Assembly: GCA_030704615.1 (NCBI GenBank)
Contig: CM060733.1
Span: 35,216,001-35,280,000, forward strand
DNA: 64,000 bases
Reading direction: 5' to 3'
DNA from: Takakia lepidozioides
Lineage: Eukaryota > Plantae > Bryophyta
Shown here: in pieces, positions 1,807 through 64,000 of the stretch
How the letters are laid out: each line of letters begins with the position of its first letter
How positions within the stretch are numbered: the stretch's first letter is position 1
Notes under the pieces: generated by a model
Seen by the model: the letters and a program-made list of their open reading frames with translations, nothing else
Told to the model about the DNA's origin: nothing
Databases searched by the model: none
Program-made: the position numbers and the translations under genes

Positions 1807-4800
1807 CTACAGGCATCTCTTTGCAATTCTCAAGAGCAGCCCCTTTTTCAGACGTGGGAAGAAGGGGTAGGCGGTGATTTCCTCATTGGGGTCGACAAGT
1901 GACCATTGTAAGCGTCTAACCAGTTGATCCACAAACACCAACATCGCCAACCGCGCCAACTCATAGCCAGGGCAGCTGTGTATACCTCCTCCAAAGGGTA
2001 TAAACGTGTACTGAGGAGGTCCCGTACCTTCGAATCGGGAGGGGTCAAAGTTGCGTGGTTCAGGAAAGTACTCCGGGGCCATGTTGGAGCGATGTGATGA
2101 AAACATCACCTGCTAAACACAACAAACTGATGATTAAGATCTCTCGCATCAGAAATGAAGCTTTCCTCAATCGAGAATTGTAAATCTATGAGCTATTTTG
2201 GGCCTAGTCCTCAGAAAGCGTGAGGAGCATAATCATGCGAGTTACTGTGATATCCGACAGTGCTGATTGTTTTGGACGAGTTATTGACCACTTGAACTGA
2301 TAAGGTTAAGTGGTTTTGATCGATGAAGCCCATGACAAAAGAGTGCTTGGACCATTGGAGCCCAATATTGGGAATTAGATGCTAGTGGGTGGATCTGAGC
2401 GGGATGTACCTTCCACCCCTTGGGAATTGTAAAGCCATCGAACTCAAAATCGGTAATAGCCTCCCGAAAGAGGAGTGGCACCACTGGTACTGTGCGCATA
2501 CTTTCTTGGATAACGCGCCATGTGTACTTCATCTGCCTTGTGTCTGTCCAGTTCAGTACTGCTCCAGGTTCCCTCGCTGCCTCAATCTGTCTTAGCTCTG
2601 GAAATTCATACATTTAATCAGTAAGCAGTTCTACTGGAAAGAATGTACTCATAAGACGTTGTTTCCCGTACCCTTGTGGTCATTGACCCAGCGCCCAGTT
2701 TGAGCGGAACACAAAGAGACAGAAACTACCTTTGTCAGGGGCTGATGCTGATAGTATGACTTACCTTGGAACAGACAATTGATCCGAGTTTTCCAGAGAT
2801 CCTCTAAAAATCCCTTTACACAAGCATCGATCTGCTGTGTACGATTTGCCCAATAACTAGGCCCCAAAAGGGCCAGAGCTTTTGGGTCAGCCTTGAGATT
2901 TTCAAAGTTGGTAAACAGAGGTACAGGCACAAATCCCTTGATGGATTAGAAGAGGGCGTCTCTCTGGTGAGTACCCAGGACAATGAATCAGAAAATGAAT
3001 TTTGTCTTCAGGTTGCCCACACCACAGGCACTTGCAATCCCCTCTTCCTCTCTGCATCTGTTTGCTGTTTAAAGGTAGGCTGTATTGAGAGAGTGGGTAA
3101 ACCCTTGAGGTAGGCAACAGACATGGCTTTGGACACTACAGCCTCTAAGTCAGATTTTTATGCAGCGGGTCAGGACTTGCGGACTTAAGATTCAGATTCT
3201 TTGAGAATCTCTTGTACCCTCTTCCGCCAGGACTTAGCCTGTTTGACAGGCCCATGATCCTGCTTCCAAGATATAAAGTCGATTAACTTAGGGTATCTGA
3301 TATTAGTCATACGTTGCAGCTGACCCCACCATCTGACCTTGAATGCTTAAGGGAGGGGAGGGATGCCAAACTCACCCCGAACAGCCACATTAGCTGTTTT
3401 GGAACATGCTGACATGCACTCCTTAAGCACCCCACTTGCATGGATTCTACAGACTTAGCCTGGTTGGAGTTATCAATCCATACTGCAGATGCTTACTCAA
3501 GGCAGAACTGACTTCAGAGAAAGAGAAGACGAAGGTCAACTCCTGCTGAAGCAAGTCGTAAGCCGAGTAGAAAGTGAAGAGAGATGATTTGATAGCTAGA
3601 GTAACTTGTTTCACTTCTTTCTTAACTAAGCTTATATTATGAGAGTTCGCTGGTATACTAGAGACTTCATGATTCTGTATTGAGACTGAGCTCAGCCTGT
3701 AAGCACCATCGAAAGCGTCAAGATTCTATAGTTGGGAGGTGAGCTTTTTCAGTATACTTCTCATCTTTCTAATCAATTTGCTTGTCGTAAAAGCCTTCAG
3801 ATTTTTTGGCTTTGTTAAAATTAGGGCTTCCCTGACAGGAATTTTCCCTGGCACGTGATTACAGGTTTTTGCCCCGGGACGGGGCTGTAATCTCAGATTA
3901 TGGAATCTGTCCCCCATATTTTATGGATCTATTATTCTTAATATAGGGCAGACGATTTTCAAACTTGGGCAGCGATTGTTGTAGTACGTGACGATGAAAC
4001 CCTGGTGGCAACGCAGAGGAGAAACGGGCAGTATCGAAAACGGGCAACTTCGTTTTTTACGTAAGAGGTAAAGCCCTCGCCCTTGGACTTTCCTGGATTT
4101 GAGGCGCCTGTCCCGAGGGCAGGGGTCGAAAATCCAGGAAAGTCCTCGGGCAGCTTTACCTCTTACTAATATCAATGATGTCATAGGAAAGGTACTTGGG
4201 ACAATGTGGCATGAGATGAAGGCTACCTTTCAAAACCTCGTTCAAGCAGGTCGGATTATCAGCCAAGAGGCGCAACGTCAAGGAAAGGGAGGCGGCAGTG
4301 GTCTCGTGGCCAGCAAACATGAGGACGACGAGGTTGTCTAGGATGGCAGTCTCGGTGAGGAACTGTCCATTCTCGTCCGGCGTCGTCAGGAGCACTGACA
4401 GAAGGTCTTGAGGTGGCGATGCAAGTTTGTCTTCGAGTTCCTGCCACGGTACAGATCATCCATGGTGATAACAATACTTTCAAGAACAATCACTGATCTC
4501 TTGAAAGAACCAAGGTAATAAATATCCAGCAGGGTCTTCAGCAACTAAGATAATCTTCGGAAGTCTAAATTCACCCCTGACTGCCATGTGTTGCCAAGAT
4601 CTCATATAAATCGGTCATCCAACTAATGAGGTTGAGTTGCAATATGTAGCAAGCGGGAAATTATATGGTGGATTCCACTTTGAGGTTCTCTTGTTACCTG
4701 GCGCCTTCTTGTCATGATGGCGCTCAGGCCACTGAGGAGGATCTTACGAGCGCGTTTAGCTTTCCAGAAACGAGTGCCCGGGATATCAAAGGGAAAGTCC

Positions 4801-6321
4801 ATAAGGCCATCCACCAAAGTAATGAATGCATCCAAAAGATTGTTGAGTTCAGGGCCCTCCTTTAAGCTCAAGAAGAGATCGCATGCCGAAACAAATGCAA
4901 ATCGTTTAATGCACTCAGATCCTGTCACTTGGTCTTTATTCTCCCAATGCTTGGATATGTGGGCAGCTGCAAATACCTCCATTCTTGGCACAAAGCTCTG
5001 GATCGATTCAGGATTGAGGAAGGTCATGATGATGCGGCGGTTGCGTCTGTGCAATCTCCCCACAGTTGAGATTAGTTCAAAGTAGCAGCATTGCGATCAC
5101 CTGTGAGTCTAACTTTCAGGAATTCTTATTGTGGGTCATATTGTCTCGCAATATTGGCAAGGTCGAGCACAGCCTGTTGTGTATGAAGTTGTTGACTTCC
5201 TGCATGCCAGTCTAACTTGTCTAAGTAGAGCAGTGATCATCATACCACACGCCGCCATGTGGTGTGTACACAGACATGTTGCAAATTCGAGACTAACTGA
5301 ACACTGTTGAAATAGGTAACAGTTCCAAGGAAGTTCTTAAGCAAATCGTTCACTTGCTTTGGCAGGTGTCCAGGCTATTTGTTTTTTCCAAGTACACCCA
5401 AGCCACTGGCACTGGGCCATTGAGAGTGAAAATTAACCCCCTTTTGGAGCCATTGAGGCACGTCCAGGGCTATTATTCTGAACACTTCACAAGTTTGTCC
5501 ATTTCAAAGCAATTAAAGGAGTATTATTTACCTGTAAGAGTCGGGCGTCCCCAAGGTATAGCTTTCTTTCCCAAGAAGGATGGAAAATGAGCTGGGCCAG
5601 CAATTTCGAACCAGTTTGTTCTCATTCGCAAACACGAACTTGTTTCCAGCAGGCGCGGGCAAGCACACAGTCTTGTCACCCATTAGCGAGGTTTTGAACA
5701 CCACTCCATATTTCTTCTCCCGAGCCTGCGACCGGATGAAACCATGAGATCATTTGGCAGAATCTCATATCACAGCTCTGAAATCTACGTTGAGACTTCG
5801 AAATTGACCTATTGTTTCAGCACCGTATCTCACTCATACTACGTGGATGATCGATAAGTGGATCCAAAGAATTGGCAAAATATTGGGCACCACGAATCTC
5901 AGAATCAGCTGCTCGTGGCAGAACATGCCGTACACGGTTTCTCAGAACATAGCTCAGCCGCATACAACAAGACCTTCATCATTCGAGTTCATGTATGTCT
6001 AGTCTAAGCATCTAAACTAGCTGCATGATCTAGTGGCTTCATTGGCATTGCCTGAAAGAAATCTTGGGGTCTGTAGATGCGCATCGCTGAGAGGTAGCTA
6101 AGTGTCTCCCCAATGACTGGAAGCCCCAATCGACCCGGTGGAAGTGGGGGCCGGCCTTTGAGCCGATTCTTCTCTGATTGCGAAGGAATAATCCAGAAGA
6201 CCAGCCACAACACCAGAGTCCCAAATAGCAGTGCAAAGAGTGAACCCAACGTTGCCCCATGTCTGATCACTGTTCCCGTATACACTTGCCACGGTCTGTC
6301 GATCCCAACCAAGTTTGTCAT
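1807..6321 (-). CDS. Cytochrome P450, CYP85 clan (CYP716/725/728-like), 6 exons, ~505 aa
   Basis: Exons 6321-6052, 5725-5532, 5046-4698, 4440-4227, 2597-2410 and 2109-1807 total 1518 nt with consistent phases. Motifs: N-terminal TM helix, [17 protein letters not shown]-helix AGHETT, K-helix ESMR, FDPSRF and heme motif [10 protein letters not shown]. Family assignment is by eye. Confidence 0.92.
2636..3500 (-). mobile_element. Decayed LINE 3' portion inside P450 intron 4
   Basis: Minus-strand remnants [16 protein letters not shown] and a C-terminal Cys/His motif [17 protein letters not shown] typical of LINE ORF2 ends. The 3' end matches copies at 35.7, 52.2 and 55.0 kb. Confidence 0.6.
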
Positions 6322-6737
6322 CCCTACTGTTAGGTGCCAATGGAGCTCGGACTGGTACTGTGAACCAGTTCTTTTCTGTGCAGAGTCAATCTTTGTAAAT
6401 CAAGCGAACAGCTCTTTGAAATTTTGGAGTTGGGTCCTATCACGGTTCCTGTCACTGTTGAGAAATGGATTGGACTTGTGCTAAGATTGAAATCTAGTGA
6501 GCAACGTGATACCTACCCACTGAGCTCTCTATTAGAATCTACTCAAAAACTTCATGCCCTGCAGCTTCGCGTCTCAGGCTGTGCACTTGAACTAATAAAA
6601 TTGAATGTCTATGTGTGACATACCAGAACTATAGCGAGCTGAGGAACTCCAAAGCCACAAAGGAGGCTCACCTAAGTGCTCAGAAAGCGGGCTGTCAGAT
6701 CTTGCATATGCGAGGAACCCTGCCTGGGTATTAACTA

Positions 6738-7146
6738 TTAACCCCTAAAGCGCCGGGAGTGTTTTTGGTGGGCCACCTTAAAAATGGGACCCACCCTCAT
6801 GGATCAGGCCGTATCTGCTAGCAGGAGTTCATCCAGAAAATGAACCTTACCAACTGGCAAGCTACCTAACTACATGCAAGTGGGAAGAAATGACCCTCAC
6901 GTTTGGGAGATTATAATAAATTACCATGGTGGATTTGAAAACTCCAAGCAAATCTTGAAGGAAAAATGAGCTTTGACCAAGCAAATTTGCCCTCACAATG
7001 ATATTTCCTGAGGCCCGGACCACCTCAATCAGAAAGAGAAGAGGGTTACAGGTGTCCTCATGAAATTGGACCTCTTTGGATCAGCACCTGGCGAAAATCG
7101 TCAATTTTATTTTTTTAAATAAAGGGAAACAGAGCCTGGGGGTTAA
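6738..7146. mobile_element. Possible non-autonomous piggyBac-like element upstream of the P450
   Basis: Bounded by TTAA-CCCC (6738) and GGGGG-TTAA (7146). The terminal match extends only ~4 bp beyond TTAA. Confidence 0.25.
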
Positions 7147-8816
7147 TTAATCTGGCCACTTCCCAGAGATCAAGTTTAACAAAGATTTTAACTGAATGAT
7201 AAGTATGTCTTAATTATTAATTTTCCAATGAGAAAGATAGGGGGACGGTGGTTGGTGTGAATGGTGTACAACCTCCAAGGCACGGCCTTCATGGGGATTC
7301 TCTGATATTCAGCTTCTTCTGCTTAGGGATGTTGTGCAGAGGGAAGGCGTGAATGTGGAGCAACAGCCAGTCCAATAGGATCAGTCAAGGTAGATTGCAG
7401 GAAGCTGTACAATACCAATGGCTGCCTGCAAGGGTTTCAAACCTGATCTGCTATGAAGATATGATGAATATGAAGGCAGAGCTTTGCAAAAGAGAGCAGC
7501 TCAACTTCAAACAAAGAAGATAGAAAGCAAGACACAAGAAAAACATCAATCGTGAGGTTTTCGGATATAGAAAGCGAGAACATTAGGTGATTTCTTGTAT
7601 GTATGCGGAAAGAATTGGATGTCCAGTCTAGTTTGGTTCAACCACTTGGGAAAGCAGACATAACATTCGTATTATCGACCTATAGATAAGTTCCGGCCCC
7701 CCTTGTGATGTAATGAAAAGGCAGTGTATAGGGAGCGTATAGGCCTTCCGAGTTTATTTTCTTAGAAGCAAAGAATGTGGAGTAGTTCAAGAAGACTATT
7801 CAAAAGAGCTGCTGTCACAGGAACGTTTTAACTTCCCCAGTTCATTTAAGTTCAGCTAATTTGATTACATGTTCTTGTGTTTTTGGAAGTGGGGTGCGTG
7901 CACTCAATTGCACAGTGCAGATGCGAAGATGGTGACACATCATGCACGATGACTACTCTTGTATGTTCGTTTCCTTTTTGTGCCCCTCTCTCGTGCTGTA
8001 GCTACTGGCAAGGCTACATCAAGGGATGTTGAATGAGTACAATTGGCTAAATGGAGGTTGATGAATGCACACTGCACACTCCAGCTTCAAGTCGGTATTG
8101 GGTACCAGCCTCTCATGAGAGCTCGTCACAGTAAGGGGTGGCACTGACCATATTGACAAGGTGTCTTTGATAATTGTGACATTTTTAACAAATGCATGGT
8201 ACATGCTTAGCCCTGCCCTTTATCATCTCAGAGTAAGGTTGCTATTTTAAGGTTGCTATTCCAAATAATAGTGTCCATCATATAATTGTAATCCTGTCAA
8301 TTTGGGATCAATCTATCCCATACAAATTTGAGACTATAGCCTTGAATCCGTCCAGTCAGTCTTCCATTGTTTATTTTCATGCAAAGAAAGTAGAGATTAA
8401 TTCTGTATTGCTACCCACATGTCACTCATTCTATGAAATGCCCATATGTTGTTTCGGTAACTACTATGACCCACTGCCCATACTTTTTCTCTTAACTTGA
8501 CACTAAAAGCAGCAAACAGTAACAAGCACATATATTCATCCAACACCAAAATATAAGTATTCCATCTAGACACAATCATCCAGCAACATTGGTCCCTTGA
8601 AAGCTGGTCCGTAACTTGTAAAATTATAAGTGGGGAGAAACCATTGCGTATTCTCTGCATGTCTAGGTATTGATTCACAAATGAAAATTGTACTAAGTAC
8701 TACATACCCAATACTACAATAACGTATGAGTTGCGTATGAAAATACTACTCCAAACCCAACACTAGTTGCAGTACCACGTCCAAGAATTCAACCCTCATA
8801 TGTCGTATTTGGGAAC

Positions 8817-10445
8817 TCAAATTCTATCCGAAGAGAATGAACTCGAGAACTCGAGGAGTCTACCGTTCATGCACGTCCCATTGCATGCAGTCTTAACACC
8901 CAAATTAGGGTTGTGATATCCACTGCGGAGCGCAGCCAGGGCATATGCAGTTGTCGTGATCTCGTTCCCGAACCAGCTTTTGGGGTCGTTGTAGGAATAG
9001 AAGGGACAGACATCCCATGAACCATCCACGTTCTGCAACCGTGCCAGCTGCTTCCGATCGCTGGTGTTCCCGATGCCGCACAACTCGCAAGCTATCAGTC
9101 TCATTGCCAGGGCAAGAGCGCTCCCTTGCATTCCAACATGCTCGCTCACCCGCTGCGCCAGTAGTTCCAGAAAGCCTGTCTTTTGGAAGTGCTCCTTGAA
9201 CTTGTGAGCAAGGCCAGCAAGCTGACACAAAAAGGTCTCTGGCAGGGGATAGTATATACTCCCCCGCAAATATGCTCTGCTCTTGAGCAAGTTGTACAGA
9301 AACTGTTCGGTCTTCTTCACAGGTGCGGGTCGGCCTGCTAGGTGAAATAGATAACAGATGCTGGCCTGACTGACCGCATCTATCCTTGGACGCGAGGGGT
9401 CGAAGTACGCCTGGAAAATGCCATCCTCGGTCCTCATATCTAGCATCTTGTCCAATACGGCGTTGATTTGTTTCAAATCTACTTTCGAGAACTTGTACAA
9501 GGCAACTAGCGCCACTGCGGTTGTGTCGAGATCATCTGGGAAAGCTTTGTGGGTGGCCGCGTTGGTATTAACATCTCTTTGGACCAGCCTTTCCTCTGGA
9601 GGGAAAAAGTTAAACGTCCCGGTTGCTGGAGCTGTATGCATGGGAAGGAAGTCTGGGTCCTCTAGCAGATCCGCCATCACAAAGTGGTCGAAGTGGACTG
9701 GGACTCGAAGGCCATCGGACGTAAGAGAGGGACATCTATCAACTGATCCTCTCCTCCGCAACAAATAATCAGCAGCGGCTAACAGCCTCTCTTCATCAGT
9801 GCGAAGATGGTACAATACAAGGTTGACCGTCACCTTGACGTCTTCCGATCCGACAAGAACACCAGTGAAGCCCAAGGACTCAGCAGCAACCACATTCTGT
9901 AGTGTGTCGTCGATGAAAATGGTTTCTGATGCTTTGCAACCCGTCTCGTGCAAAACGTGCTGGAAATAACCGAAGTTGGGTTTGCGAATCCCAACGGCAG
10001 CGGAATAGAACACTCTATCAAACTTCTGGAAAAGATCTGGGAATCTCGCGAGGAGGTAGTCGTAGTCTTCTCTAGCAGCATTAGTCATGCAGAAGAGTTT
10101 GAGCTTGCCCGTAGAAGCTAGAGCATCTACCAGTTGGAGAATTGCACTAACAGGACGGAGAGAGCCTCTCGCTCTGTCGACGAATGTTTGAACATCTTCT
10201 GCATTGAAACCGTTGTCGAGGGACACCCTGTGCAAGGTTTCCGCCCAGGACAGCTTGCCCTCAATATATTGGAACCAAACATGGCTGCGCAGTATACGCT
10301 TGAATCGAACGGGGTGCAGCGGCGTGCCGTGACTGTTGTCTAAGTTGGGCACCAGCAGAACTCCGCCGATGTCGAAGCATACACTTTTGAATGGACTGTT
10401 GCTGCAGCTGAGAAATGGGAAAAGCTCGGTATTCAGACTGCCCAT
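8817..10445 (-). CDS. Intronless HAD-like hydrolase / class II terpene cyclase fusion (drimenol/albicanol synthase type; AstC/DrtB-like), 542 aa
   Basis: N-terminal HAD domain: FDIGGVL, TN, RKP, FIDDTLQNV. C-terminal class II cyclase domain: FPDDLDTT (DxDTT), YFDPSRPRID, RGSIYY and QW motif QNVDGSW. Single uninterrupted ORF. Confidence 0.9.
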   Translation of the reverse strand: MGSLNTELFPFLSCSNSPFKSVCFDIGGVLLVPNLDNSHGTPLHPVRFKRILRSHVWFQYIEGKLSWAETLHRVSLDNGFNAEDVQTFVDRARGSLRPVSAILQLVDALASTGKLKLFCMTNAAREDYDYLLARFPDLFQKFDRVFYSAAVGIRKPNFGYFQHVLHETGCKASETIFIDDTLQNVVAAESLGFTGVLVGSEDVKVTVNLVLYHLRTDEERLLAAADYLLRRRGSVDRCPSLTSDGLRVPVHFDHFVMADLLEDPDFLPMHTAPATGTFNFFPPEERLVQRDVNTNAATHKAFPDDLDTTAVALVALYKFSKVDLKQINAVLDKMLDMRTEDGIFQAYFDPSRPRIDAVSQASICYLFHLAGRPAPVKKTEQFLYNLLKSRAYLRGSIYYPLPETFLCQLAGLAHKFKEHFQKTGFLELLAQRVSEHVGMQGSALALAMRLIACELCGIGNTSDRKQLARLQNVDGSWDVCPFYSYNDPKSWFGNEITTTAYALAALRSGYHNPNLGVKTACNGTCMNGRLLEFSSSFSSDRI

Positions 10446-10512
10446 GCTTCAAGGAGGCCACGGCCGTGCAATCGAATGGGTCCGACCTCCTGCTGAGTAG
10501 TATCTTCAAACC

Positions 10513-10539
10513 GGGTTCAAACTTTATAGGTTTGAACCC
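10513..10539 (-). promoter_or_regulatory. Putative TATA box of the terpene cyclase gene inside a 10-bp inverted repeat
   Basis: gggttcaaac-tttatag-gtttgaaccc; the minus strand reads CTATAAA about 80 bp upstream of the ATG at 10445. Confidence 0.45.
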
Positions 10540-11139
10540 CTTGGTGCGCCCGGTGGCTTAACGTCTTGGCAATACGTCGCTTTGCACCAGCGCTTCTTTT
10601 TTAGGCGAAATGGAGCCTAGAAGCGATAAAAAACAAAGGGCTGCGACAGCCCTATGTAAAATCCTGGGAAAAAATACAAAAAATGCGCCAGAAAATAGGG
10701 GCGCGCGCACGGGCTGGTGCCAGAAAGCTCTAGGGGAATATGCGTGTTGCGCCAGAAATACACGTTCCCCACAGCCCTACATCTAGCGGCTGTCGCCCCC
10801 ATTGCGCGATCAACGGTGGAGATCTCGTCATGGAGCACGACCTGGCTTTGGACTTCTTTGATTAATTATTTTAGATTTCAGATTGTGAGTGGGCTCAAAT
10901 CGCCATATTGCATGCAAATGAAATAGCCTGTAGCCAGTTGATTTTTAGCTAAGCATCTATGTCATCGCCACCTTTGCACTTAGCTTTCAAATTTTGTAGC
11001 CATCTACGCTTCTTAGCCAAAATGAAAAAAAAAGCCCTGCTTTGCACCTATGGCAGATACTTGAGAACTTGGCTCTTGCATAATTTTCGAGGAACTTGGC
11101 CTCCATCGATTGTGTGAAGATTTATTGGCGCTGTCCCCG

Positions 11140-11400
11140 CCGGCCGCAAGGGATCGAGGCATTGTGGAACAACTTGCCTAGGCGGCGAACTAGGCTTATC
11201 CATCCATTAAGCCTAGTCTATGGAGAGTTGATGGGACCCGCAAGGGATTGTGGAACATCTTGCCTACGGAGAGAACTAGGCTTATCCATCCATTAAGCCT
11301 AGTCTATGGAGAGTTGATAGGCATGATTCATGAAACCGTGGAAAAAGTATAAAACAACAACCCCATACAATCAGCAAGGACAGAGCCTCTTGTGGCGGAG
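11140..11400 (+). repeat. Dispersed repeat with internal tandem duplication and hairpin
   Basis: actaggcttatccatccattaagcctagtctatggagagttgat occurs twice (about 11189 and 11275). A reverse-complement copy lies at 38048-38225. Confidence 0.7.
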
Positions 11401-12280
11401 CCCCTTGTTGACTCTGGAGTTGCACGCGAGCCTGCTTTTTCTGGGCCCTGTCCAAAACCAGACATACCCTCATGGGTGAGGGTATATCTCTCATTTGACA
11501 CACATCCGACGGGATGAACCGTACCAAAGTGATCCTACCTACTTCATACACCTCATGTAAAAATATCAGGAGATTTGACCATCTAATTAGAAAACAATGC
11601 TAGGCCAAATTTTCTACCATTTTCCATTTTCATAGTGAAAAATTTTGTTTGACCCTACCATTTAGAATTTTCTTTGATACATGCTACCCAGATTTTAATT
11701 GTATGGCACCTACAACATGTCCACCCAAAAATCTAGAGAAAAATGCCAAAAGTTCACAAAGGTTGCTTTGTATGGGAAAACAAGGGGGTAAAGATGGCCA
11801 TTTTTATTATGGGACCCCCAAATAACCCCAAATGTGTCCCAATTTTTGAGGGAAGCAAAATTCCTCTGGTCATGTTGTTACTTGCCTTCATACTCACTAC
11901 CCTGAAAAAAATTGAAACCATGGCAAAGATTGCAAAAAAAGGGATTTCCTACTTGAATCCAACTATTGCCTGAGCCCCGTAGATAATTCCGGCAAAGGAA
12001 AAGAGGCCACGTCATCATTACCAATGAACTCAAGGGGCTGTTTTGAGGGTGTTTAGTGGGAGCCCGTTTTTGGTGCGCCCACGCAGACAAAGCCGTCCAG
12101 CTCCATCTGCCTACCACCTGATAAAGTCAACCCTGCTGGAGGGCCCCAACCCATCGAAATTTAAATTCCTGACGGCAGTCGTTTAAGTTTTTTAGGGTGC
12201 CATCAACGGAGCGGGTGCAGAACTTAATGAGCTACATCTTTCATTCAGGGCTTGATTTCATCTTCATCCCAAAGGGTTAC

Positions 12281-12535
12281 TGCGTTCCACTAGGAAGGTG
12301 GACACATTTGTGACACCAAGGGTGGGTTGAACCCACAACCACTTCCGAGGTGGTATGTGCATTCCGCTAGGAAGGTGGACACCTTTGTGACTCCAAGGGT
12401 GGGTTGAACCCACAACCACTTCCGAGGTGGTATGTGCGTTCCGTTAGGAAGGTGGACACCTTTGTGACACCAAGGATGGGTTGAACCCACAACCACTTCC
12501 GAGGTGGTATGTGCCCATTACCACTGGGCTACACC
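12281..12535 (-). repeat. Three tandem 77-bp units of a tRNA-derived SINE-like head
   Basis: Units start at 12281, 12358 and 12435 (period 77). The minus strand shows an A-box TGTAGCCCAGTGG once and a B-box GGTTCAACCC in every unit. A related single copy lies at 40531-40605. Confidence 0.75.
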
Positions 12536-12606
12536 TTGGTTAGCACGGCCAACATCCTACACCAAGCTACAATCCTCAACACTTCCCACAATCCAATCCT
12601 TTTAAT

Positions 12607-12740: not shown

Positions 12741-13239
12741 AATGGCGGATCTGCATTTCAATGTTCAATTTTCACAAGCCGCATCAATCAATATCAACAG
12801 ACCCAAATAACCTTACATTCACTATATGAACTTTCAAGCATCCACAGTGGGATTGGATCTTGGTGGGTTAAGGGTAGCTTTTGACAATATTCATGTAAGT
12901 TCATCAAGGGCTCCATCCAAAGCCACACCACGAGAAACAAACAAACATGTCCAAATTTAAGATGCTGAACAAACTTGTGCACATGGCTGCCCCTCTCATC
13001 AAGCTCATTAAAATTCGTATCCACTTCCATCTTCAAGCTTTGGTGAAGCTCCACCACCCAAACCTAGAATTAGGACAGTACTCTGATTTCCATCCATTGT
13101 CACCAGAATCAGTCAAAAATCACCCCTTCAGTCAAGTGCAATTGTGGGCTAACTTCCTCCCTATGCCGGGTAGACCCCTCTATCAGGAAATGGTGGATGG
13201 TCTGAGTGGCTACACAAATCAATGAATGAAGCAAGACAC

Positions 13240-15770
13240 CATATCCTGCGATCATCGCATTCCACGACACCACATTTCATTCAGCCATATTGTCAAATCC
13301 TCCCTTTGCATCCTCATTGCACTCACATTTGGTACAATTCCAGCTTTGATGATGTCACCATGAACCTCTTTGTCCTTTTCCAGGGCTGCCAGGCTTGCAC
13401 ACGCATTGCAAACGCATACAAACGTGATGTGGTCGGGCTTCACCCCTTCCCCCATGCCTCCATCCCGCACACCTGCTATGCATATCCTACAAGCATGGCG
13501 TTCCATGACACCAAATCTCGTTCAGCCATATTGTTGAACACTCCCTCCACATCCTCGATGCTCCCACATTTGGCATACATGTTTACGAGGGTATTGTTCA
13601 GAATCACATCTGGTACAATTCCAACTTCGGCGATGCAACCATGCATCTCTTTGCCCTTTTCCAAGGCTGCCAGGCTTGCACACGCATTGCAAACACAAAC
13701 AAATCTGATGTGGTTGGGCTTCACCCCTTTGCGCAGAATCTGCTCATAGGTCTCAAAAGCATTCCTACCACACCCATGCTTAGTAAATCCTGCCAACATT
13801 ATACTCCACGTGATCAAGATCGTTGAGGCATTCTGTTGAATGCTTCCGCATCTTTTGCTCATAGGTCCCCAAAGCCTCCATCCCACACCCATGTTGGGCA
13901 TATCCTGTGATCATCGCATTCCACGACACCACATCCCGTTCAGCCATGTTGTCAAATACTCTCTTTGCAACCTTCATGCTCCCGCATTTCGCATACATGT
14001 CAACAAGGCTATTGTTCAAAATCAGATTTGGTACAAGTCCAGCTTTCATATGTCAGCATAGACCTCTTTGCCGTTTTCTAGGGCTGCCAGTCTCGCACAA
14101 GCCTTGAGAATGCAAACAAATGTGACCTGATCGGGCATCACCCCTTGCTGTATCAGTTGATCATATGTCTCGAAGGCATTCCTACCACAACCATGCTTGG
14201 TATATCCTGCCACCATATTGTTGAACACTAGACAGGCCTCCCTTACACTCCAATATTTGGCATATGTCATGTTAACAAGGGCAGTCTCCCAATTAAGGTA
14301 TGACGAAATTCCAGTTTTGATAATGTCAGCATGGATATCTTTGCCCTTCTCCAGGGCCACCATGCTGGCACCAACATTGAGAACACAGATGAATGTGGCT
14401 TGCACACGCATTACAAATGCACACAAACGTGATGTGGTCGGGCTTCCCCCCTTCCCCCATCATGGACCTCTTTGCCCTTTTCCAGGGCTGCCAGGCTTGC
14501 ACATGCATTGCAAACGCTCACAAACGTGATGTGGTTGCATTTCACCCCTTCCCCCACCATTTGCTCATAGGTATGATCCAAGGCCTCCATCCCGCGCCCC
14601 TGCTATGCATACCCTGCAAGCATGGCGTTCCATGACACCAAATCTCGTTCAGCCATATTGTTGAACACTCCCTCCGCATCCTCAATGCTCCCACATTTGG
14701 CATACATGTCCACGAGGGTATTGTTCAGAATCACATCTTTACAATTCTAGCTTTGGCAATGCAACCATGCACCTCTTTGCCCTTTTCCAGGGCTGCCAGG
14801 CTTGCACACGCACTGCAAACGCACACAAATGTGATGTGATCGCGCTTCACCCCTGCCCCCATCATTTTGCTCATAGGTCTCCAAGTCCTCCATCCCACGC
14901 CCTGTTGTGCATATCCTGCAAGCATCACATTCCACGACAACAAATCTCGTTCAGCCATATTGTTGAACACTCCCTCTGCATCCTCAATGCTCCCACATTT
15001 GGCATACATGTCCACCAAGGCAGTGTTCAGGATCACACCTGGTACAGTTCCAGCTTTGGCGATGCAACCATGCACCTCTTTGCCCTTTACCAGGGCTGCC
15101 AGGCTTGCACACGCATTACAAACGCACACAAACGTGATGTGGTCGGGCTTCACCCCTTCCCCCATCATTTGCTCATAGGTCTCCAAAGCCTCCATCCCAC
15201 GCCCCTGTTGTGCATACCCTGCAAGCATCGCGTTCCACGACATCACATCTTGTTCAGCCATTTGAAAACTCCCTTCGCATCCTTCATGCACCCACATTTG
15301 GCATACATGTCCACCAGGGCAGTGTTCAGGATGACATCTGGTACAAATCCAGCTTTGACGTTGTCACCATGGACCTCTTTCCCCTTTTCCAGAGCTCCTA
15401 GGCTTGCACACGCATTGCAAACACAAACAAATATGTTGCGGTTGGGCTTCACCCCTTTGCACATCAATATCTTTCGCGCATCCACCAAACTCCCACACTT
15501 GGCATACATATGGACAAGGCTAGTTCCTACATAAACATCTGATTCAAATCCAGCTTTGACAATGTGGGCATGAAGCCCCTTGCCCTGCCCTAGAGCTGCT
15601 GGGCTGGCACACCTTTTGAGGATGCAAATGAGAGTGACCTTGTCGGGCTCTACACCTTCTTGTGGCATTTGCCCAAAGAGTTCAAATGCATCTTCACCAT
15701 GCCCTTGCTCAGTACATCCTGCAATTATTGCAGTCCAAGAGACCACGTCTCATTTCGGCATTTTGGCATC
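13240..15770 (-). pseudogene. Frameshifted PLS-class pentatricopeptide repeat (PPR) array
   Basis: Repeated P-L-S motifs (DVVSWNAMLAGYAQQG, KPDHITFVCVCNACASLAALEKGKEVH, NTALVDMYAKCGSIEDA) are split across several frames. No E/DYW domain was seen. Confidence 0.88.
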
Positions 15771-50191: not shown

Positions 50192-51774
50192 ATGATTGGG
50201 GGAAACCAGGACCGTGCGGTTGTTTCAGTGCCCGTCGGCAAGTCTGGAAACTATGAGCAAGCAGTTATGATTCCAGAAGAGAATCTCCAAGAAGTAATTC
50301 CCGTACGCACCGTTGATAATGGCGTGATGGTGTCTTCTAAAGAGATTTTGCGGACACTGCAAAGAGGGCAGTCCTTGCAAGCGTTTATATATCTAGAAAC
50401 CAGCGATGGAGAGATTGAGGAGGTGGAACGAGAGGTGGCGCTACTCTCTCCCCTTGTACAGCGTGATGTTTTCCGACATTCCCGCGGGATGACACGCAAC
50501 AGGCCGGTGGTGCTTCCAAAACAGGTGCGGCAGTCTCTCTCTCTCGTTTATGTGGTTGGTTTTCTGTGGTTCTGTCTTGTCCTCACTTGGGCTATCAGTT
50601 GACGTTATAAAGTTTATTTGTTTTTCTCCTTCCTTCTCTGCATCCTTCTAAAGTAAAATTAGCGCCTCATTGCACCTAGTGGGCGAGACTATAGCGAAAC
50701 ATTGCAAGACGGGGAAAAATGAAAATTTAAGGGGCGCATGTACTTTTGCGGCTCAGTAAGTACTCCTACTTGGCCTTTTTCATCAATCTTAATATTTCTT
50801 CCCTGTTTCTCAGGCGTAGTGGTGTTACATTTGTTTGAAATGTGCAATTGTTGCAGGTCAGTCCTTGTGCGTTAAAACAAATCCTGGACTATTGCCGGTT
50901 TCATCTAGTACTTGGCCGCTCAGATAAAGAGCGCAAGGTGTTTGATGAAAAATTTGTGCGACTGGACACGAGGAGGTTGTGTGAATTAGCTTCAGCTTCT
51001 AGTAGCCTGGACATGGAACCTTTGGGAGATTTGACTAGCCGTGCTCTCGCCAGAATGATAGAAGGAAAGACTCCAGAGCAGGTACGGGAAATTTTTCATT
51101 TACCTGACGATTTGACTGAAGAGGAAAAACTGGAGCCCTTCAATATCAGTACAGGAGACCCCCGCATTAAGTTATTAAATCGGTTGTATGCCAGAAAGAG
51201 AAAGGAGCTTCAGGAGAAGAAGCTGCTGAAGAGTGGCAAGATAGAACCCACAGAGAAGCAGATCAGTGATGAACGCTCTGTAGAAGATTTGGTTTCATTT
51301 ATTGATGGAGGCAATAAGGACAACAGAGTGGGCAAGGGTAGGAGGAGCAAAAATCGACGAAAGAAGGAGCAGTCTGGGTGCAGTACCAACTTTAGGCAGG
51401 ATTATCATAGTGGGGAAGCTGTAGAGACTAAAGAGGAGAGAGATATTCTCTCAGTGGCCCCAGCAAGGACAAGGGGAATGACCAGTAGCATCAACCGTTG
51501 TAGGCTTCTTCCAAGAGACCAGGATATATTGTTTGAGGAGGAGTACGAGAGTGACGGGTTTGACCCAGCACTGAAGGAGGTGATGGACAGGGAGGTTGAA
51601 GAGTTTGCTCGGCGCTTGAATTCAGTTTGGTCAGAACGGACGCAAGAGATTCTTACCCTAGCTTCTAAGGGTCAAAAGGCTAGAGATACAGCATCATTTT
51701 TGGACCCAAGGCTTGCACGGTCCAATGCTGGTGATAGAGGCAATGGTGAAAGCGCCCAGCATCATGTACAATAA
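50192..51774 (+). CDS. SKP1-like protein, ASK20/ASK21 (type II) class, 2 exons, ~416 aa
   Basis: Exons 50192-50524 and 50857-51774 (GT-AG, phase 0). Motifs IYLETSDG..EEVEREVA, ILDYCRFH, FDEKFVRLDTRRLCEL, LARMIEGKTPEQVREIFHLPDDLTEEEKLEP, DPRIKLLNRLYA and DREVEEFARRLNS. Confidence 0.9.
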
Positions 51775-59299: not shown

Positions 59300-62200
59300 T
59301 TAAATGAAAGGGGATGATATTTCTGTTGATACAAAAATAGGAATATTGTGTGGAAGTTTGTAAGCGATGTATATTGGTTTGTGATAGTCAGTCCAATATG
59401 CTTCTGTGGTACCGGATTTAGAGTCTTTCCCTAACACATTTGCCCATATGTGGTCTAATTGTGAGCCACTCTTTGTTGTGCTCATTTGAAATTGTGACTG
59501 AAGTTTATACGTATTCATAAAGTTGTGTAACTGTGAATTTTCAAAGTCATTGTCACTGATATGTAACAAATCAATATTGAAGTCCCCAATATTATTGTTT
59601 GGCACTGAGGAGGGGCCTTTAAAATGAAAGTTTCAAGATATTTTAAAAATAGTTTGGTGTTTGTAGAATGTGATCAATATATAGATATGACATATATTGC
59701 TTTACGTGTATTTATGTTGAAAGTGGCAGCTATGTACATGTTAATGTTTCTGAATAATTAAGCGTCATGTTTTTGTGTATAATATAAGAGCGCCATGACC
59801 ATCATAAGCTCCTGTATAATTAAATTTTTGTGGTATCTATGTATTGTTGTAACTCAGATGTTGAGTGATGAACTCTTGTTTCAGTAAGGCAAAAGATGTT
59901 AGATGATTGTCAATTGTGATCAGAGTTGATGTCTTTGTGATGTTGGCGAAGAGTCGTTGTGTTTAGAGCTTGAATTATGATATGGGAATATTGGTATATA
60001 CTTAAGTTAGGAACTAGTAGTTTCCATTTTGCATTTGATTTGAGTTTGAGCATCTCGTGATTTACAGAGTCATCAACTCGGAAGTTGGTTTGGTGCAATG
60101 GAAATAAAAGATATAACTTTTCTTTGGTGCGAACACGAGAAAGTGCTGTATAAGTTAGGCCATATTTACAAACGTTAGTAGGATCAAAAGCCATTTTATC
60201 CAATGATAAACCTTGAGATCGATGGATTGTTCTTGCAGCAGCAGTTGTAGTGGAAATTGGATTCGTGTGATTACATGAGAGTCAACGTTCCCTATTCTAA
60301 TTTCTTTTGTGATAGGTTCAATTGGAGTCCAAGTTGGGATTATATTGTCAATGTAAAAATGTTGGTTTTTATGTCTAGTGAGTAATCTTATTTTTGGATT
60401 TTGAAAATCAATCCAAATGATGTCTTTATTATTAGTAGATGTTGTTGTTTGAAATATACCATCTGCACCATTAACTAGACCATCAAATGTTTGATAGTTG
60501 CGAGCACATAGCTCCACCAACATATCTTTTTTTAACCGGATGATATGGTGGAGACCTGCTGTTTTGGATGGGTCTTTGCTTAAATTTAGAGATGGAGGGC
60601 ATGAATGATGTCGTACATTAATAGCTTCGAAATTATAAACTTGGCCTGAGGTTATGGAAAAAATATAATCATTATGTGCACGGGTTAATTCGTTAGTGTA
60701 GTATATGTATGGTAGTGTTGGGATAAGGGGTGGAGTCTTTAGGCATAGACTATTTATGGTATTTATATCTTCAATTGTTTGTGATGCTGTTCGAAACCGA
60801 TTGAGTATTTCAATAAATGTGTCATGCAATTCATAGCATTTGACATGTGTATGCCAACTGTGGGGCGCAAGGGCGTCTAGTCCAGATTGCAGTTTTTTAA
60901 ATATCCATCTCTTACCGGTGGAGCTTGATAGAAATCTCCAGTCATTATGACATCTAAGTTTCCAAAAAAATGGTTATGTATATGCTTAATATCGTAATCT
61001 TTGGTCAATGCTTCAAACATTCTGCTACCGACTAAGGATATTTCGTCAATAACTGCAAGTTGTAGTTGTTCATATTGAGCTGTCAATTTGTTTAGTGTAT
61101 CTGATGATAGTTTTGATATGTGTGTTAAATTTTGATTTATCGGTATACATAATGTGGAGTGTATAGTGGAACCATCAATGTTAAATGCAGCCTTCCTTGT
61201 ATAAGCCATAAGTATAGCTTTGATTTTAGTGGGATCAGACCCAAGCTGTTGGTTGTATAATCGTAATAAACCTTGAATAATTAGTTTTAATGTAAATGTT
61301 TTACCTGTACCAGCACCTCCTATTAGAAATAAATGTATTGGTTTAGTGGGGTGTACTCTTTTGCGGAACATACAATCGTCAAAAATACATCTTTGCTCTG
61401 GATTTAGCTGTCTTAGAAGACAACGAAATTGTTGTTCATCCATTAGGGTTGGGCATCTTGATAAAGAAGAGTTATCTTCATTGTGAACGGATGTTATGCG
61501 TGTATTACGAGGTCTAATGTAAAAATCATCGTGAATGTTATATCTCTTTGTATTACTATTATCTGTTATTGGAATAGCAAAGTGCATGTTGTCCTCGTCA
61601 TTGCTTTGACGATCAATGTTTGTCCACATGTTTTGGTTATGGTGGTTTGACAATTCAAATGAACAAGTTTGTAAGTCATCCCAACAAACATTGGAGTCTG
61701 TGTCCTGTTGTACATGAAGTTTATATGTAAAAAAGAGATTTTATTTGTGATATAGATTGGGCATGTTCAGAATATGCTTCATGCCATATGTTATGAATGC
61801 CTATTTGTTGTTCTTCTCGTCCTCAAAAATGATGGTATAAAAGAAGGTGTTCTCTTGCCCAGTTTTCTATATCTTTATGTTTATTGTAGTGAACAAATCT
61901 TAAAAATTTCATTTTTTTACATTTGATAAATTTATTCTTTATAATATATATGATGAAGAAAATTCAGCTAAAGATGAAGAATCCAATTCCATAGGCCTGT
62001 GTACGTACCTATCTATAATAGGGACACATAATGTCAGTGGAATGTGGATCTAATTTTTCTAATGCACTTTGAGGTTTTAGCACAAATGCCCTATTTTGAC
62101 ATGGTGAGGTATTAATAAACTTAAATGAGCGAGAGCTATGATGCAAAGGAAGTGATAAAACTAAGTAGGCTGCAAGTTGGGCAGACATTTGTTGAGAATT

Positions 62201-64000
62201 TAAGAAAGCATTACCCAACTTTATTATTCGTGTATCAGAATCTACTTTGTCAGCAACACATTTTTGGATGATTGTAAGTAATTCAGATGTTATTGTTTTG
62301 TCTAGTTTTGTCATGTAAAATGTACAATAAGTGGCAGCAGCATATGGATATAAAATATTCTGTATGTCGGTGTTTGCACACCATAGGTATGCTACATGTT
62401 TAGGAAATGCGTTCGTTCGTATATTTTTGGGAGTACGTTCAAGAAATATTGAACACCTTTCCTGGGTCGGATGCGGACTCCCACAAGCCGGACAGGGACA
62501 ACTTCTCCATGCCGCGTGTTCCATTTCATCAGAGTTAATCGACTTCGTAAAGCTAAGATATACGTGTTTTCGTCTAATGTTAAAGATTGCAAAAATTCAG
62601 TGAAAGTAATATCTTCACCCATATTCATTTCATGTAGTTTTAAGAAGAGTTTATTAGCTTGAGCTTGTAAATGAGCACATGATGTTGAAACTATTTCATT
62701 TTCTTAAGAATTTGAGTGGAAGGCATAGGTGGTAAAGGGTAATGGAATCTACATATAGGTTGTTTGTTTTTTCTACATGTACGTATGTGTTTATGGGATT
62801 GCACATCTTGTAAATGAAGTGGTAAAAGTGATGCTTCATATGAAATAATTTTTTGCACAAAAGATTGAATTTTATCATTATTATCAATTGTAAATAATGG
62901 AGCATCTTTGATCCAAATGAGACCATGGTCATGTTCACTTCCTCTGCTTTGGAACTCAGTAACGAAAAAGAAATCTTCTACTTTACCAAGAAGGTTGGTT
63001 ATTTTTTTTATCATTTTTTGAAAAGCTGTTGTACGATGGTCGGAGTATCAAGCACATGTTATAGAATCAGTTCGGATTAGTTCTGCAATATGTGTCGGTT
63101 CTAAATCCTCAATTTTGTTAGGTATATTTAATTTTTCATAGTTTAGTTTGTGAAGCGCTTGAATTAAAGGTTCCCACAATCGTTAGCACTAGTAAGAGTT
63201 ATGAAAAAAGTTGGTGGACCTAATTGTCGAATCATTTGTAAATAAGTTTTTTCATAGGTCTTCTAAATAATCTGGAGATGTTCTCAAGCTTTTTAAATCT
63301 CGAAAACCAATATATGAATTTAGAATTCGATCTATATTTGGATTACCACGGACTTCAGCGGCTATTAGTAGTCCTCCATTCAATATACCTTTCCGAATTC
63401 GAATCCAGCTTGATGACATGACTTTGGAAATACATACTTTAGAAGCTTTGAAAAACAAATTGGGTATATTTGTACAAAAGTTATGATTTTTGTGTAGTAA
63501 TTCCCATTGTGCTATTTGTTGATATGAAAAGTTTTTGTAAATATCAGGTTTTCGAGAACAGCCAAAAAATAAAGTTGAGAAATTCAATTCTTCAGTGTAT
63601 TTGTCTTTGAAAAGTCTTATGGGATGAGATTTTTCTGTTGGTGCTATGGACAAAATTTCATTTTCATAATCATGGATTGTTTCAGAATGTAAAAAATTGT
63701 GAATCATAGTATCTGTTTCAACATTGTCTTGTTCTTCTTCAAATGTATCATTTGTGTCATCAACATCTACATCTACGTCATGATCGTCACTCTGATTTTG
63801 ATTATGTAAAGCAAAAAGGCTTGCCCATTGAGGACGAATTGTTATATTTAAATCTACATATAATGGGGTTTGAAATAAGCCAACATAACAACATTAGGTC
63901 GAATGTTACCTGCTAGATATGGAGATTTATACTGTAGTCGTCTTTTAAGGTAAAGACCTAAAGTAGCATCATCGTAAGGGAGGCGTGGCAGTATTGTTTG
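59300..64000 (-). mobile_element. Decayed autonomous Helitron of the endonuclease-bearing (Helentron/Helitron2) type; continues beyond the window
   Basis: AT-rich and frameshifted. Rep motifs PPTFFITL, EFQSRGSEHDHGLIW (HUH-like) and YCTFYMTK. PIF1 motifs GGAGTGKT, IDEISLV, GDFYQAPP, LVNGADG and YTALSR. C-terminal AP-endonuclease-like GDFNIDLL, SQLDHIW and TDYHKPI. Confidence 0.88.

Follow-up and report, generated by a model that had tools for sequence, protein, structure and literature searches.

We report that a 64,000-nucleotide stretch of the genome of the bryophyte Takakia lepidozioides (assembly GCA_030704615.1, contig CM060733.1, positions 35,216,001 to 35,280,000 of the forward strand; hereafter the window, to which all coordinates below refer) carries, at 8817..10445 on the minus strand, a single-exon coding sequence for a protein of 542 amino acids. 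We interpret it as a genuine, transcribed nuclear plant gene for a sesquiterpene cyclase-phosphatase of the AstC/DrtB/AsDMS family, in which a haloacid dehalogenase-like (HAD) domain is joined to a class II terpene cyclase domain. The gene is probably functional and adds a plant member to an enzyme family known from microbes and apparently unreported in plants until now; it is neither a recent or private acquisition nor a contaminant. For this account as a whole, including the mechanism of catalysis and the ancient origin proposed below, we estimate a probability of about 0.7, with the substrate, the product, the phosphatase activity and the cellular location all drawn from homology.

The N-terminal part of the protein is a HAD phosphatase domain (residues 20-202; 9840..10388, minus strand; Pfam PF00702/PF13419) with the motifs D25-x-G27, T121, K155 and D179-D180. 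Pfam PF00702 matched residues 20-192 with an E value of 1.1e-10, and NCBIfam assigned the domain to HAD subfamily IA variant 3. It is followed by a class II terpene cyclase beta domain of the AstC-like_C type (residues about 236-510; 8916..9740, minus strand), recognised by the match of the AstC cyclase-domain chain 22ty to residues 238-508 (E 7e-30, phmmer against the Protein Data Bank, PDB). In the same search AstC (22tz) and AsDMS (9mhs) were colinear with nearly the entire protein (residues 17-508, E 8.5e-58, and residues 18-506, E 3.1e-51, respectively), which bore out the proposed kinship to fungal and bacterial drimenol-type cyclases, and PF28380 (AstC-like_C) was present in homologues of the window protein. 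An AlphaFold2 model built from 35 homologues had a mean pLDDT of 89.5, with disorder only at residues 1-5 and in the tail 512-542, and its cyclase domain was all-helical. When the model was submitted to Foldseek, ten AsDMS chains came out on top (E about 1e-31), followed by HAD phosphatases, including YihX and the phosphatase of soluble epoxide hydrolase (sEH), and by class II cyclases, including squalene-hopene cyclases and MstE. The structural matches were thus HAD and class II beta-domain folds only: the alpha fold, DDxxD and NSE/DTE of class I microbial terpene synthase-like (MTPSL) proteins are missing, and no Pfam match to the terpene-synthase alpha-domain family was obtained at E values up to 1. 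The N-terminal HAD fold, the single C-terminal beta domain and the DxDTT motif instead place the protein in the HAD-TC beta family. An earlier sequence-only reading of this DNA had proposed a HAD plus DxDTT/QW class II cyclase architecture unrelated to canonical plant terpene synthases (TPS) and class I MTPSLs, and on both counts it agrees with the Pfam, phmmer, motif and Foldseek results.

The first HAD beta-strand begins at residue 21, level with the N-termini of AstC and AsDMS, and therefore leaves no room for a transit peptide, in line with the earlier remark that none was obvious. Since there is no N-terminal extension, we consider a cytosolic location of the protein a reasonable inference. 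A plastid or peroxisomal signal was considered and rejected: besides the missing extension, the protein terminates, at the end of its disordered tail, in -DRI, and this is not a canonical peroxisomal targeting signal of type 1.

The catalytic residues were mapped through pairwise alignments with AstC and AsDMS and an alignment of 35 family sequences, using residues tested experimentally in the published work (PMC12232559, PMC13244436). The DLDTT motif at residues 305-309 (9519..9533, minus strand) aligned with D271/D273/T274 of AstC and D321/D323 of AsDMS. Its presumed general acid, D307, is conserved in 34 of the 35 family members, and its presumed base, D305, in 33. Thr308 is kept, as are Tyr399 (Y361 in AstC; 34/35) and the diphosphate-binding residues R352, R354 and Y398, which correspond to R368, R370 and Y416 of AsDMS, R352 occupying the position of AstC K314. 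A QW-type motif is found at residues 471-477, where Q471, D474, G475 and W477 fall in invariant or near-invariant columns of the family alignment. HAD motifs I-IV are likewise intact, with D25/G27, T121, K155 and D179-D180 equivalent to D33/G35, S128, K161 and D185-D186 of AsDMS. AstC, which lacks the HAD nucleophile, has no phosphatase activity (PMC13244436); as all four motifs are kept here, the window protein looks like the bifunctional, phosphatase-active type represented by AsDMS, DrtB and AacA. The homologue from Adiantum nelumboides (P0008) retains DLDTT and has a degenerate, expanded HAD domain, with Met at the glycine of DxG and DA for DD in motif IV; like AstC, it may no longer act as a phosphatase.

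We propose the following course of catalysis. Farnesyl diphosphate (FPP) would be bound in the C-terminal beta-domain of a cytosolic enzyme, its diphosphate held by Arg352, Arg354 and Tyr398. Asp307 of DLDTT, placed by Tyr399, would protonate the terminal double bond and start a cascade to a bicyclic drimane-type cation, with Asp305 assisting in the removal of a proton. The resulting drimane-type diphosphate would then be handed to the N-terminal HAD domain, where Mg2+-dependent removal of phosphate would yield an alcohol of the drimenol or albicanol type.

The nearest relatives of the window protein are plant sequences. A word-based search returned a protein from a JGI metagenome (54% identity), two proteins of Riccia sorocarpa (49-51%), one of Adiantum nelumboides (41%) and fragments at 62-66%, and an exhaustive search gave 89 representatives at E below 1e-30. 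A set of 171 proteins was then assembled from the best 150 representatives (E below 1e-23), the word-search matches and cluster members. About 18 of the 171 are plant-like; the remainder group, by tree or by best match, with fungal or bacterial clades, among them members from Botrytis, Mycena, Lentinula, Marasmius, Arthrobotrys, Podospora and other fungi, and from the bacteria Aquimarina and Streptomyces. Identity to the nearest plant sequences is 49-66%, as against about 30% to fungi and bacteria, the highest value for any protein of the latter two being about 36%. Of the representatives below E 1e-23, not one is assigned to a named seed plant, alga, animal, protist or model bryophyte. The Atlas clusters closest to the window protein are labelled 'Drimenol cyclase drtB' and contain AstC-like_C in 100% of their members; in the cluster look-ups, Riccia is the sole named plant in the top ten.

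Trees were built with FastTree (89 rows), with IQ-TREE under LG+C20 in a short search, and with LG+G4 in a careful search with bootstraps. All three recovered plants, fungi and bacteria as three groups, each on one side of a branch, with ultrafast bootstrap (UFBoot)/SH-aLRT support of 100/99, 100/97 and 100/99, respectively. Within the plant clade there are two branches: Riccia groups with the window protein and the metagenome relatives of the latter (100/99), and Adiantum groups with two transcripts (100/100). One further sequence falls outside both. In addition to the members placed in the trees, ten fragments are plant-like by best match. None of the fungal or bacterial groups sampled encloses the plant clade, and no donor can therefore be named.

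Several relatives bear on the structure and age of the gene. The Riccia homologues lie on chromosomes of 32 Mb and 52 Mb, the copy on the former being a single open reading frame (ORF) of 556 amino acids, and the Adiantum homologue lies on a contig of 704 kb. A relative with 63-72% identity on a contig from the European Nucleotide Archive (ENA; L002) is interrupted after the equivalent of Q345 by 938 bp that begin with GT, end with AG and have a GC content of 40%, compared with 54% in the exons, which identifies this stretch as a spliceosomal intron. The exons of this relative were compared one by one, its row in the trees being the database protein of exon 1 (P0005), and four fragments with 83-91% identity to its protein end at about the same point as its intron. 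Another homologue, with 56-58% identity, on a Logan contig of SRR2148099 (L006), shows a change of frame at 1142-1148, between the residues equivalent to 286 and 302, and so represents a pseudogene unless the contig is in error; pentatricopeptide repeat (PPR) genes lie 1.8 kb downstream of it.

Taken together, these data partly support and partly correct the earlier description of the gene as derived by horizontal transfer. Its microbial-type family stands; its being private to the species or recently acquired does not, because a liverwort and a fern share its plant-only clade (100/99). A vertical distribution of homologues across streptophytes, which had been named in advance as speaking against transfer, was found in part, as a bryophyte branch and a fern branch within that clade. 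Intronlessness, offered as evidence of transfer, turned out to be weak evidence, since the L002 relative (63-72% identity) is interrupted by a canonical GT-AG intron of 938 bp. Neither nesting in a donor clade nor foreign composition, as expected of a recent transfer, was observed: the cyclase ORF has 51% GC and 58% GC at third codon positions (GC3), within the range of the neighbouring P450, BAHD and PPR exons. What was observed is a patchy occurrence in plants of a family whose bulk of diversity is microbial, as expected of an ancient transfer at the level of the family. Any transfer was thus ancient and not species-specific, in view of the plant-only clade, the intron in a relative and the neighbour-like composition. 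Most likely, a single early microbial transfer into land plants was followed by losses in seed plants and many other lineages, with the direction and the date of the event deduced from the tree and the distribution; if the root lies among bacteria, the partner could have been an early or unsampled fungus.

To follow the gene in sequencing data, four of ten available public runs were compared over 6601-12600 as short contigs: DNA run X1, the RNA-like runs X5 and X6, and a 'plant metagenome' run. X5 yielded a single ungapped contig of 1978 nt spanning 8509-10486 with two differences, and X6 yielded ungapped contigs at 8593-9845 and 9871-10512, both runs having zero depth in the single-copy flanks 6801-7400, 7601-8000 and 10601-11200. 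Because these contigs comprise the ORF and untranslated regions (UTRs) only, with no depth in the flanks, the pattern is that of unspliced mRNA and not of DNA, and the cyclase gene is apparently transcribed without splicing in two samples. The 5' UTR (10446..10512, minus strand), delimited by contig ends at 10486 in X5 and 10512 in X6, contains no upstream ATG; the start codon of the cyclase is the first ATG of the transcript, and an in-frame TGA stands two codons 5' of it. A TATAAA hexamer immediately 5' of the transcript ends (10523..10528, minus strand) is a possible TATA box. The 3' UTR (8509..8816, minus strand) is covered by the X5 contig to 8509 and by the X6 contig to 8593. The coding sequence itself, supported by the ORF list, the full-length AstC and AsDMS matches and the X5 contig, starts with ATG and runs through 542 codons without interruption, which confirms the single-exon frame given previously. 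An exact look-up found no database record identical to the 542-residue protein. A retrocopy origin is not supported, as neither a poly(A) tract nor flanking direct repeats were found.

Two positions of the coding sequence differ between the window and the runs. Codon 411 (9213..9215, minus strand) is GGC (Gly) in the window and CGC (Arg) in most reads: at position 9215 the assembly has C, and G accounts for 324 of the 365 of X1 depth and is present in both RNA-like contigs. Arg is also the family consensus at this residue (27 of the 35 aligned sequences), so that Gly411 probably reflects a minor allele or a mistake in the assembly. Position 9436 is A in the window and in X1 and G in both RNA-like runs, changing Met337 to Thr; a strain difference between the samples is the simplest reading, RNA editing being another possibility.

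The position of the gene in plant DNA, also claimed before, was corroborated from several sides. In X1 the depth is unbroken across both ends of the ORF, and a contig at 8634-8934 with no differences bridges the stop codon. In the independent 'plant metagenome' run, the ORF and both flanks are represented by fragments of nearly identical sequence at an equally low depth of 2-3, and plant genes lie within 2.5-5 kb on either side of the cyclase. Contiguity across 6-12 kb is thereby supported, not proven.

The alternatives concerning the origin of the gene can be weighed against these data. We give hardly any credence to contaminant DNA or a chimeric assembly, that is, a microbial ORF mistakenly joined to plant DNA. 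Bryophyte samples do carry many microbes, and the evidence on the locus consists of short contigs; such an error would nevertheless have to explain the continuous X1 depth with its bridging contig, the ORF and flanks in the independent run, the eukaryote-style UTRs of the transcript, homologues on Riccia chromosomes and a long Adiantum contig, and the want of any fungal or bacterial protein above about 36% identity. A recent, lineage-specific transfer from a fungus or bacterium into Takakia lepidozioides would account for an intronless ORF whose closest characterised relatives are microbial, and for the absence of the family among hits from named seed plants and model bryophytes. We nonetheless consider it very improbable, as the nearest relatives are from plants, the plant clade is well supported and lies inside no microbial group, a close relative has a GT-AG intron, and the GC and GC3 values are like those of the neighbours. 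That there was no transfer at all, the family being ancestral to eukaryotes or to a common stock of plants and fungi and lost many times, is in our view distinctly unlikely. A bacterial root makes plants and fungi sisters, with the bacteria on one side of a 100/99 branch, and to that extent agrees with common descent; very many independent losses across eukaryotes would however be required, no named alga, animal, protist or seed plant is among the representatives, and the fungal clade mixes Ascomycota and Basidiomycota at odds with the species tree, which points to a mobile gene family.

Doubts about the function of this copy deserve more weight, and together with some properties of the data they speak against our account. 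The codon AGC at 9360..9362 (minus strand), identical in both RNA-like contigs, encodes Ser362; the equivalent residue of AstC is Asn324, which forms a hydrogen bond with the catalytic Asp. In the family alignment this position is Asn in 31 of 35 sequences, including all other members of the plant clade, and Ser in three, namely the window protein and two members of the fungal clade. As N324A abolishes the activity of AstC (PMC13244436), the copy may be weakened or may form another product. Arg415 of AsDMS is replaced by Ile397, and the residues H447/Y448/A449 that steer the product of AstC are S484/Y485/N486 in the window protein, so that its exact product cannot be predicted. An expressed copy that is impaired or neofunctional, whether a paralogue in decay or an enzyme that makes or uses a different compound, would fit Ser362, unique among the plant-clade sequences, and product-steering residues unlike those of every characterised enzyme. 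We hold this rather unlikely: the reading frame is unbroken over its 542 codons, neither catalytic aspartate has been lost, nor have Thr308, Tyr399 or any of the HAD motifs, serine too is a hydrogen-bond donor and occurs at this position in the two fungal-clade members, and the gene is transcribed in two samples. Further points on the same side concern provenance and phylogeny. X5 and X6 are runs of other studies, and their RNA nature is an automated guess. The named plants in the protein set are Riccia and Adiantum only, the other members of the plant clade being plant-like contigs. The support values under the LG+C20 site-mixture model come from the short search, and the sister relation of plants and fungi holds only if the root of the tree is placed among bacteria. 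Several transfers, or a transfer from plant to plant, are possible in place of a single early gain. Our preferred interpretation remains a functional enzyme descended from a single early transfer.

The surroundings of the cyclase gene contain further genes for plant metabolism. A multi-exon P450 resembling the CYP85 clan, identified by exon reading, lies at 1807-6321 on the minus strand, with an N-terminal anchor and a PPGxxGxPxxGE region at 6004-6321 and the exon of the heme-binding FGGGxHxCPG motif at 1807-2109. At 228-1064 on the plus strand, a single ORF encodes the C-terminal 278 amino acids of a BAHD acyltransferase; its matches are from angiosperms only, the best being feruloyl-transferase-like proteins with 41-46% identity. 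On the other side, an intronless PPR gene occupies 13200-15746 on the minus strand (start approximate), as read from the ORFs in the window. PPR genes usually lack introns. The repeat units of this gene are diverged and irregularly spaced at 281-418 nt, and its frame is divided between two ORFs that overlap (14731-15297 and 15243-15746), for which a frameshift or a mistake in the assembly may be responsible. The description of the neighbours as intron-containing consequently holds for the P450; it is not borne out by the PPR gene, nor by the BAHD gene, of which the window contains one 278-residue ORF only. The BAHD gene and the P450, the latter on the same strand as the cyclase, lie directly downstream of it, and the trio resembles fungal drimane-ester clusters with tailoring genes of plant families.

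Other features of the window were noted in passing. X5 and X6 contigs are also present at 6601-6696, the expected location of the P450 5' end. Both include in addition a 40-nt piece at 7404-7443, flanked on each side by 200-255 nt of unrelated sequence, which may be either a short repeat or a micro-exon belonging to a different transcript. A repeat of very high copy number begins about 100 bp upstream of the cyclase transcript, and over 10600-12600 the summed contig depth of X1 climbs from about 150 to 10,000-85,000; at 12281-12514 a 77-nt unit occurs three times in tandem, with 95% likeness between the copies. An ORF of 310 amino acids at 50842-51774 contains a Skp1 dimerisation fragment only. 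The AT-rich region 60155-63707 on the minus strand (34% GC), with an ORF for a PIF1-like helicase at 60877-61653, suggests a Helitron-type element.

We found no report of the HAD-like cyclase family in plants; papers up to 2026 give bacteria and fungi only and contrast the family with the unrelated class I drimenol synthases of seed plants. The sequence-only reading had mentioned a few homologues reported from ferns and lycophytes; no published report of fern or lycophyte members was found, and what exists are unannotated 'hypothetical proteins' of Adiantum and Riccia. The bryophyte literature on horizontal gene transfer and on TPS that we examined does not mention the family either. Plant terpene synthase surveys target the canonical TPS fold together with class I MTPSL genes; one such survey of bryophytes used the PF03936, PF01397, TRI5 and MTPSL profiles, a set that would not detect HAD-like cyclases. 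Drimanes have been recorded from the liverworts Porella and Makinoa and from the fern Blechnum, and reviewers have used them as a chemical link between liverworts and ferns (PMC13364417), a record that fits the distribution of the family found here. A broader proposal, to which we give somewhat less than an even chance, is that land plants possess a further class of terpene synthases: a plant-specific, HAD-fused class II clade that was acquired a single time, around when land plants originated, and that survives in certain mosses, liverworts and ferns. It would supply the missing synthases of liverwort and fern drimanes of the drimenol, albicanol and polygodial type, and in Takakia would be clustered with a P450 and a BAHD gene, mirroring the fungal drimane-ester clusters by convergence. 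If true, it would add an extra terpene route to land plants, provide a concrete candidate for the source of the drimane defence compounds of liverworts and a fern, and join the MTPSLs as a second case in which seed-free plant chemistry has been shaped by an old gene from microbes.

Among the characterised enzymes, AstC of the astellolide pathway of Aspergillus oryzae (PDB 22tz, 22ty and 22ua) has the same order of a HAD and a cyclase beta domain, the same DxDTT acid/base pair with the same Tyr partner (Y361, Tyr399 here), and a basic residue, K314, in place of R352. It differs in its HAD motif, VELKD, which is FDIGG in the window protein, in releasing drim-8-en-11-yl diphosphate, in Asn324 versus Ser362 and in H447/A449 versus S484/N486; identity is about 30%, and the window protein belongs to a separate plant clade. 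AsDMS, the bifunctional drimenol synthase of Aquimarina spongiae (PDB 9mhs, 9m7d-f), is the best structural match of the model and shares the DxG motif I, the DD motif, the general acid (D323, D307 here) and the R368/R370/Y416 trio (R352/R354/Y398). It is however bacterial, with 26-27% identity, has R415 in place of Ile397, and carries Asp after DxG, where the window protein and all members of the bryophyte branch have Gly; its gene adjoins those of an FPP synthase and an AraC-type regulator.

The fungal enzymes DrtB, AncC and AacA, which form drimenol, albicanol and albicanyl phosphate, belong to the same family and have an active HAD domain, as predicted for the window protein. Their genes are also clustered with P450s and acyl-transfer enzymes. 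They fall in a fungal clade that is split from the plant clade with 100/97 support. As the tailoring genes beside the Takakia cyclase are of plant families, any cluster there came together within the plant instead of arriving as a unit. MTPSL genes offer a parallel in history, being microbial-type terpene enzymes of bryophytes and ferns that seed plants lack and that have been ascribed to old transfers; they are nevertheless class I alpha-domain proteins that ionise the diphosphate, whereas the window protein has no alpha domain and would act by class II protonation. Finally, the seed-plant drimenol synthases PhDS and VoTPS3 probably share with it the substrate, FPP, and the class of product, a drimane alcohol, and yet they are built on the canonical plant TPS fold and have no sequence relation to the window protein (PMC13244436; bioRxiv 10.1101/2025.09.20.677545).

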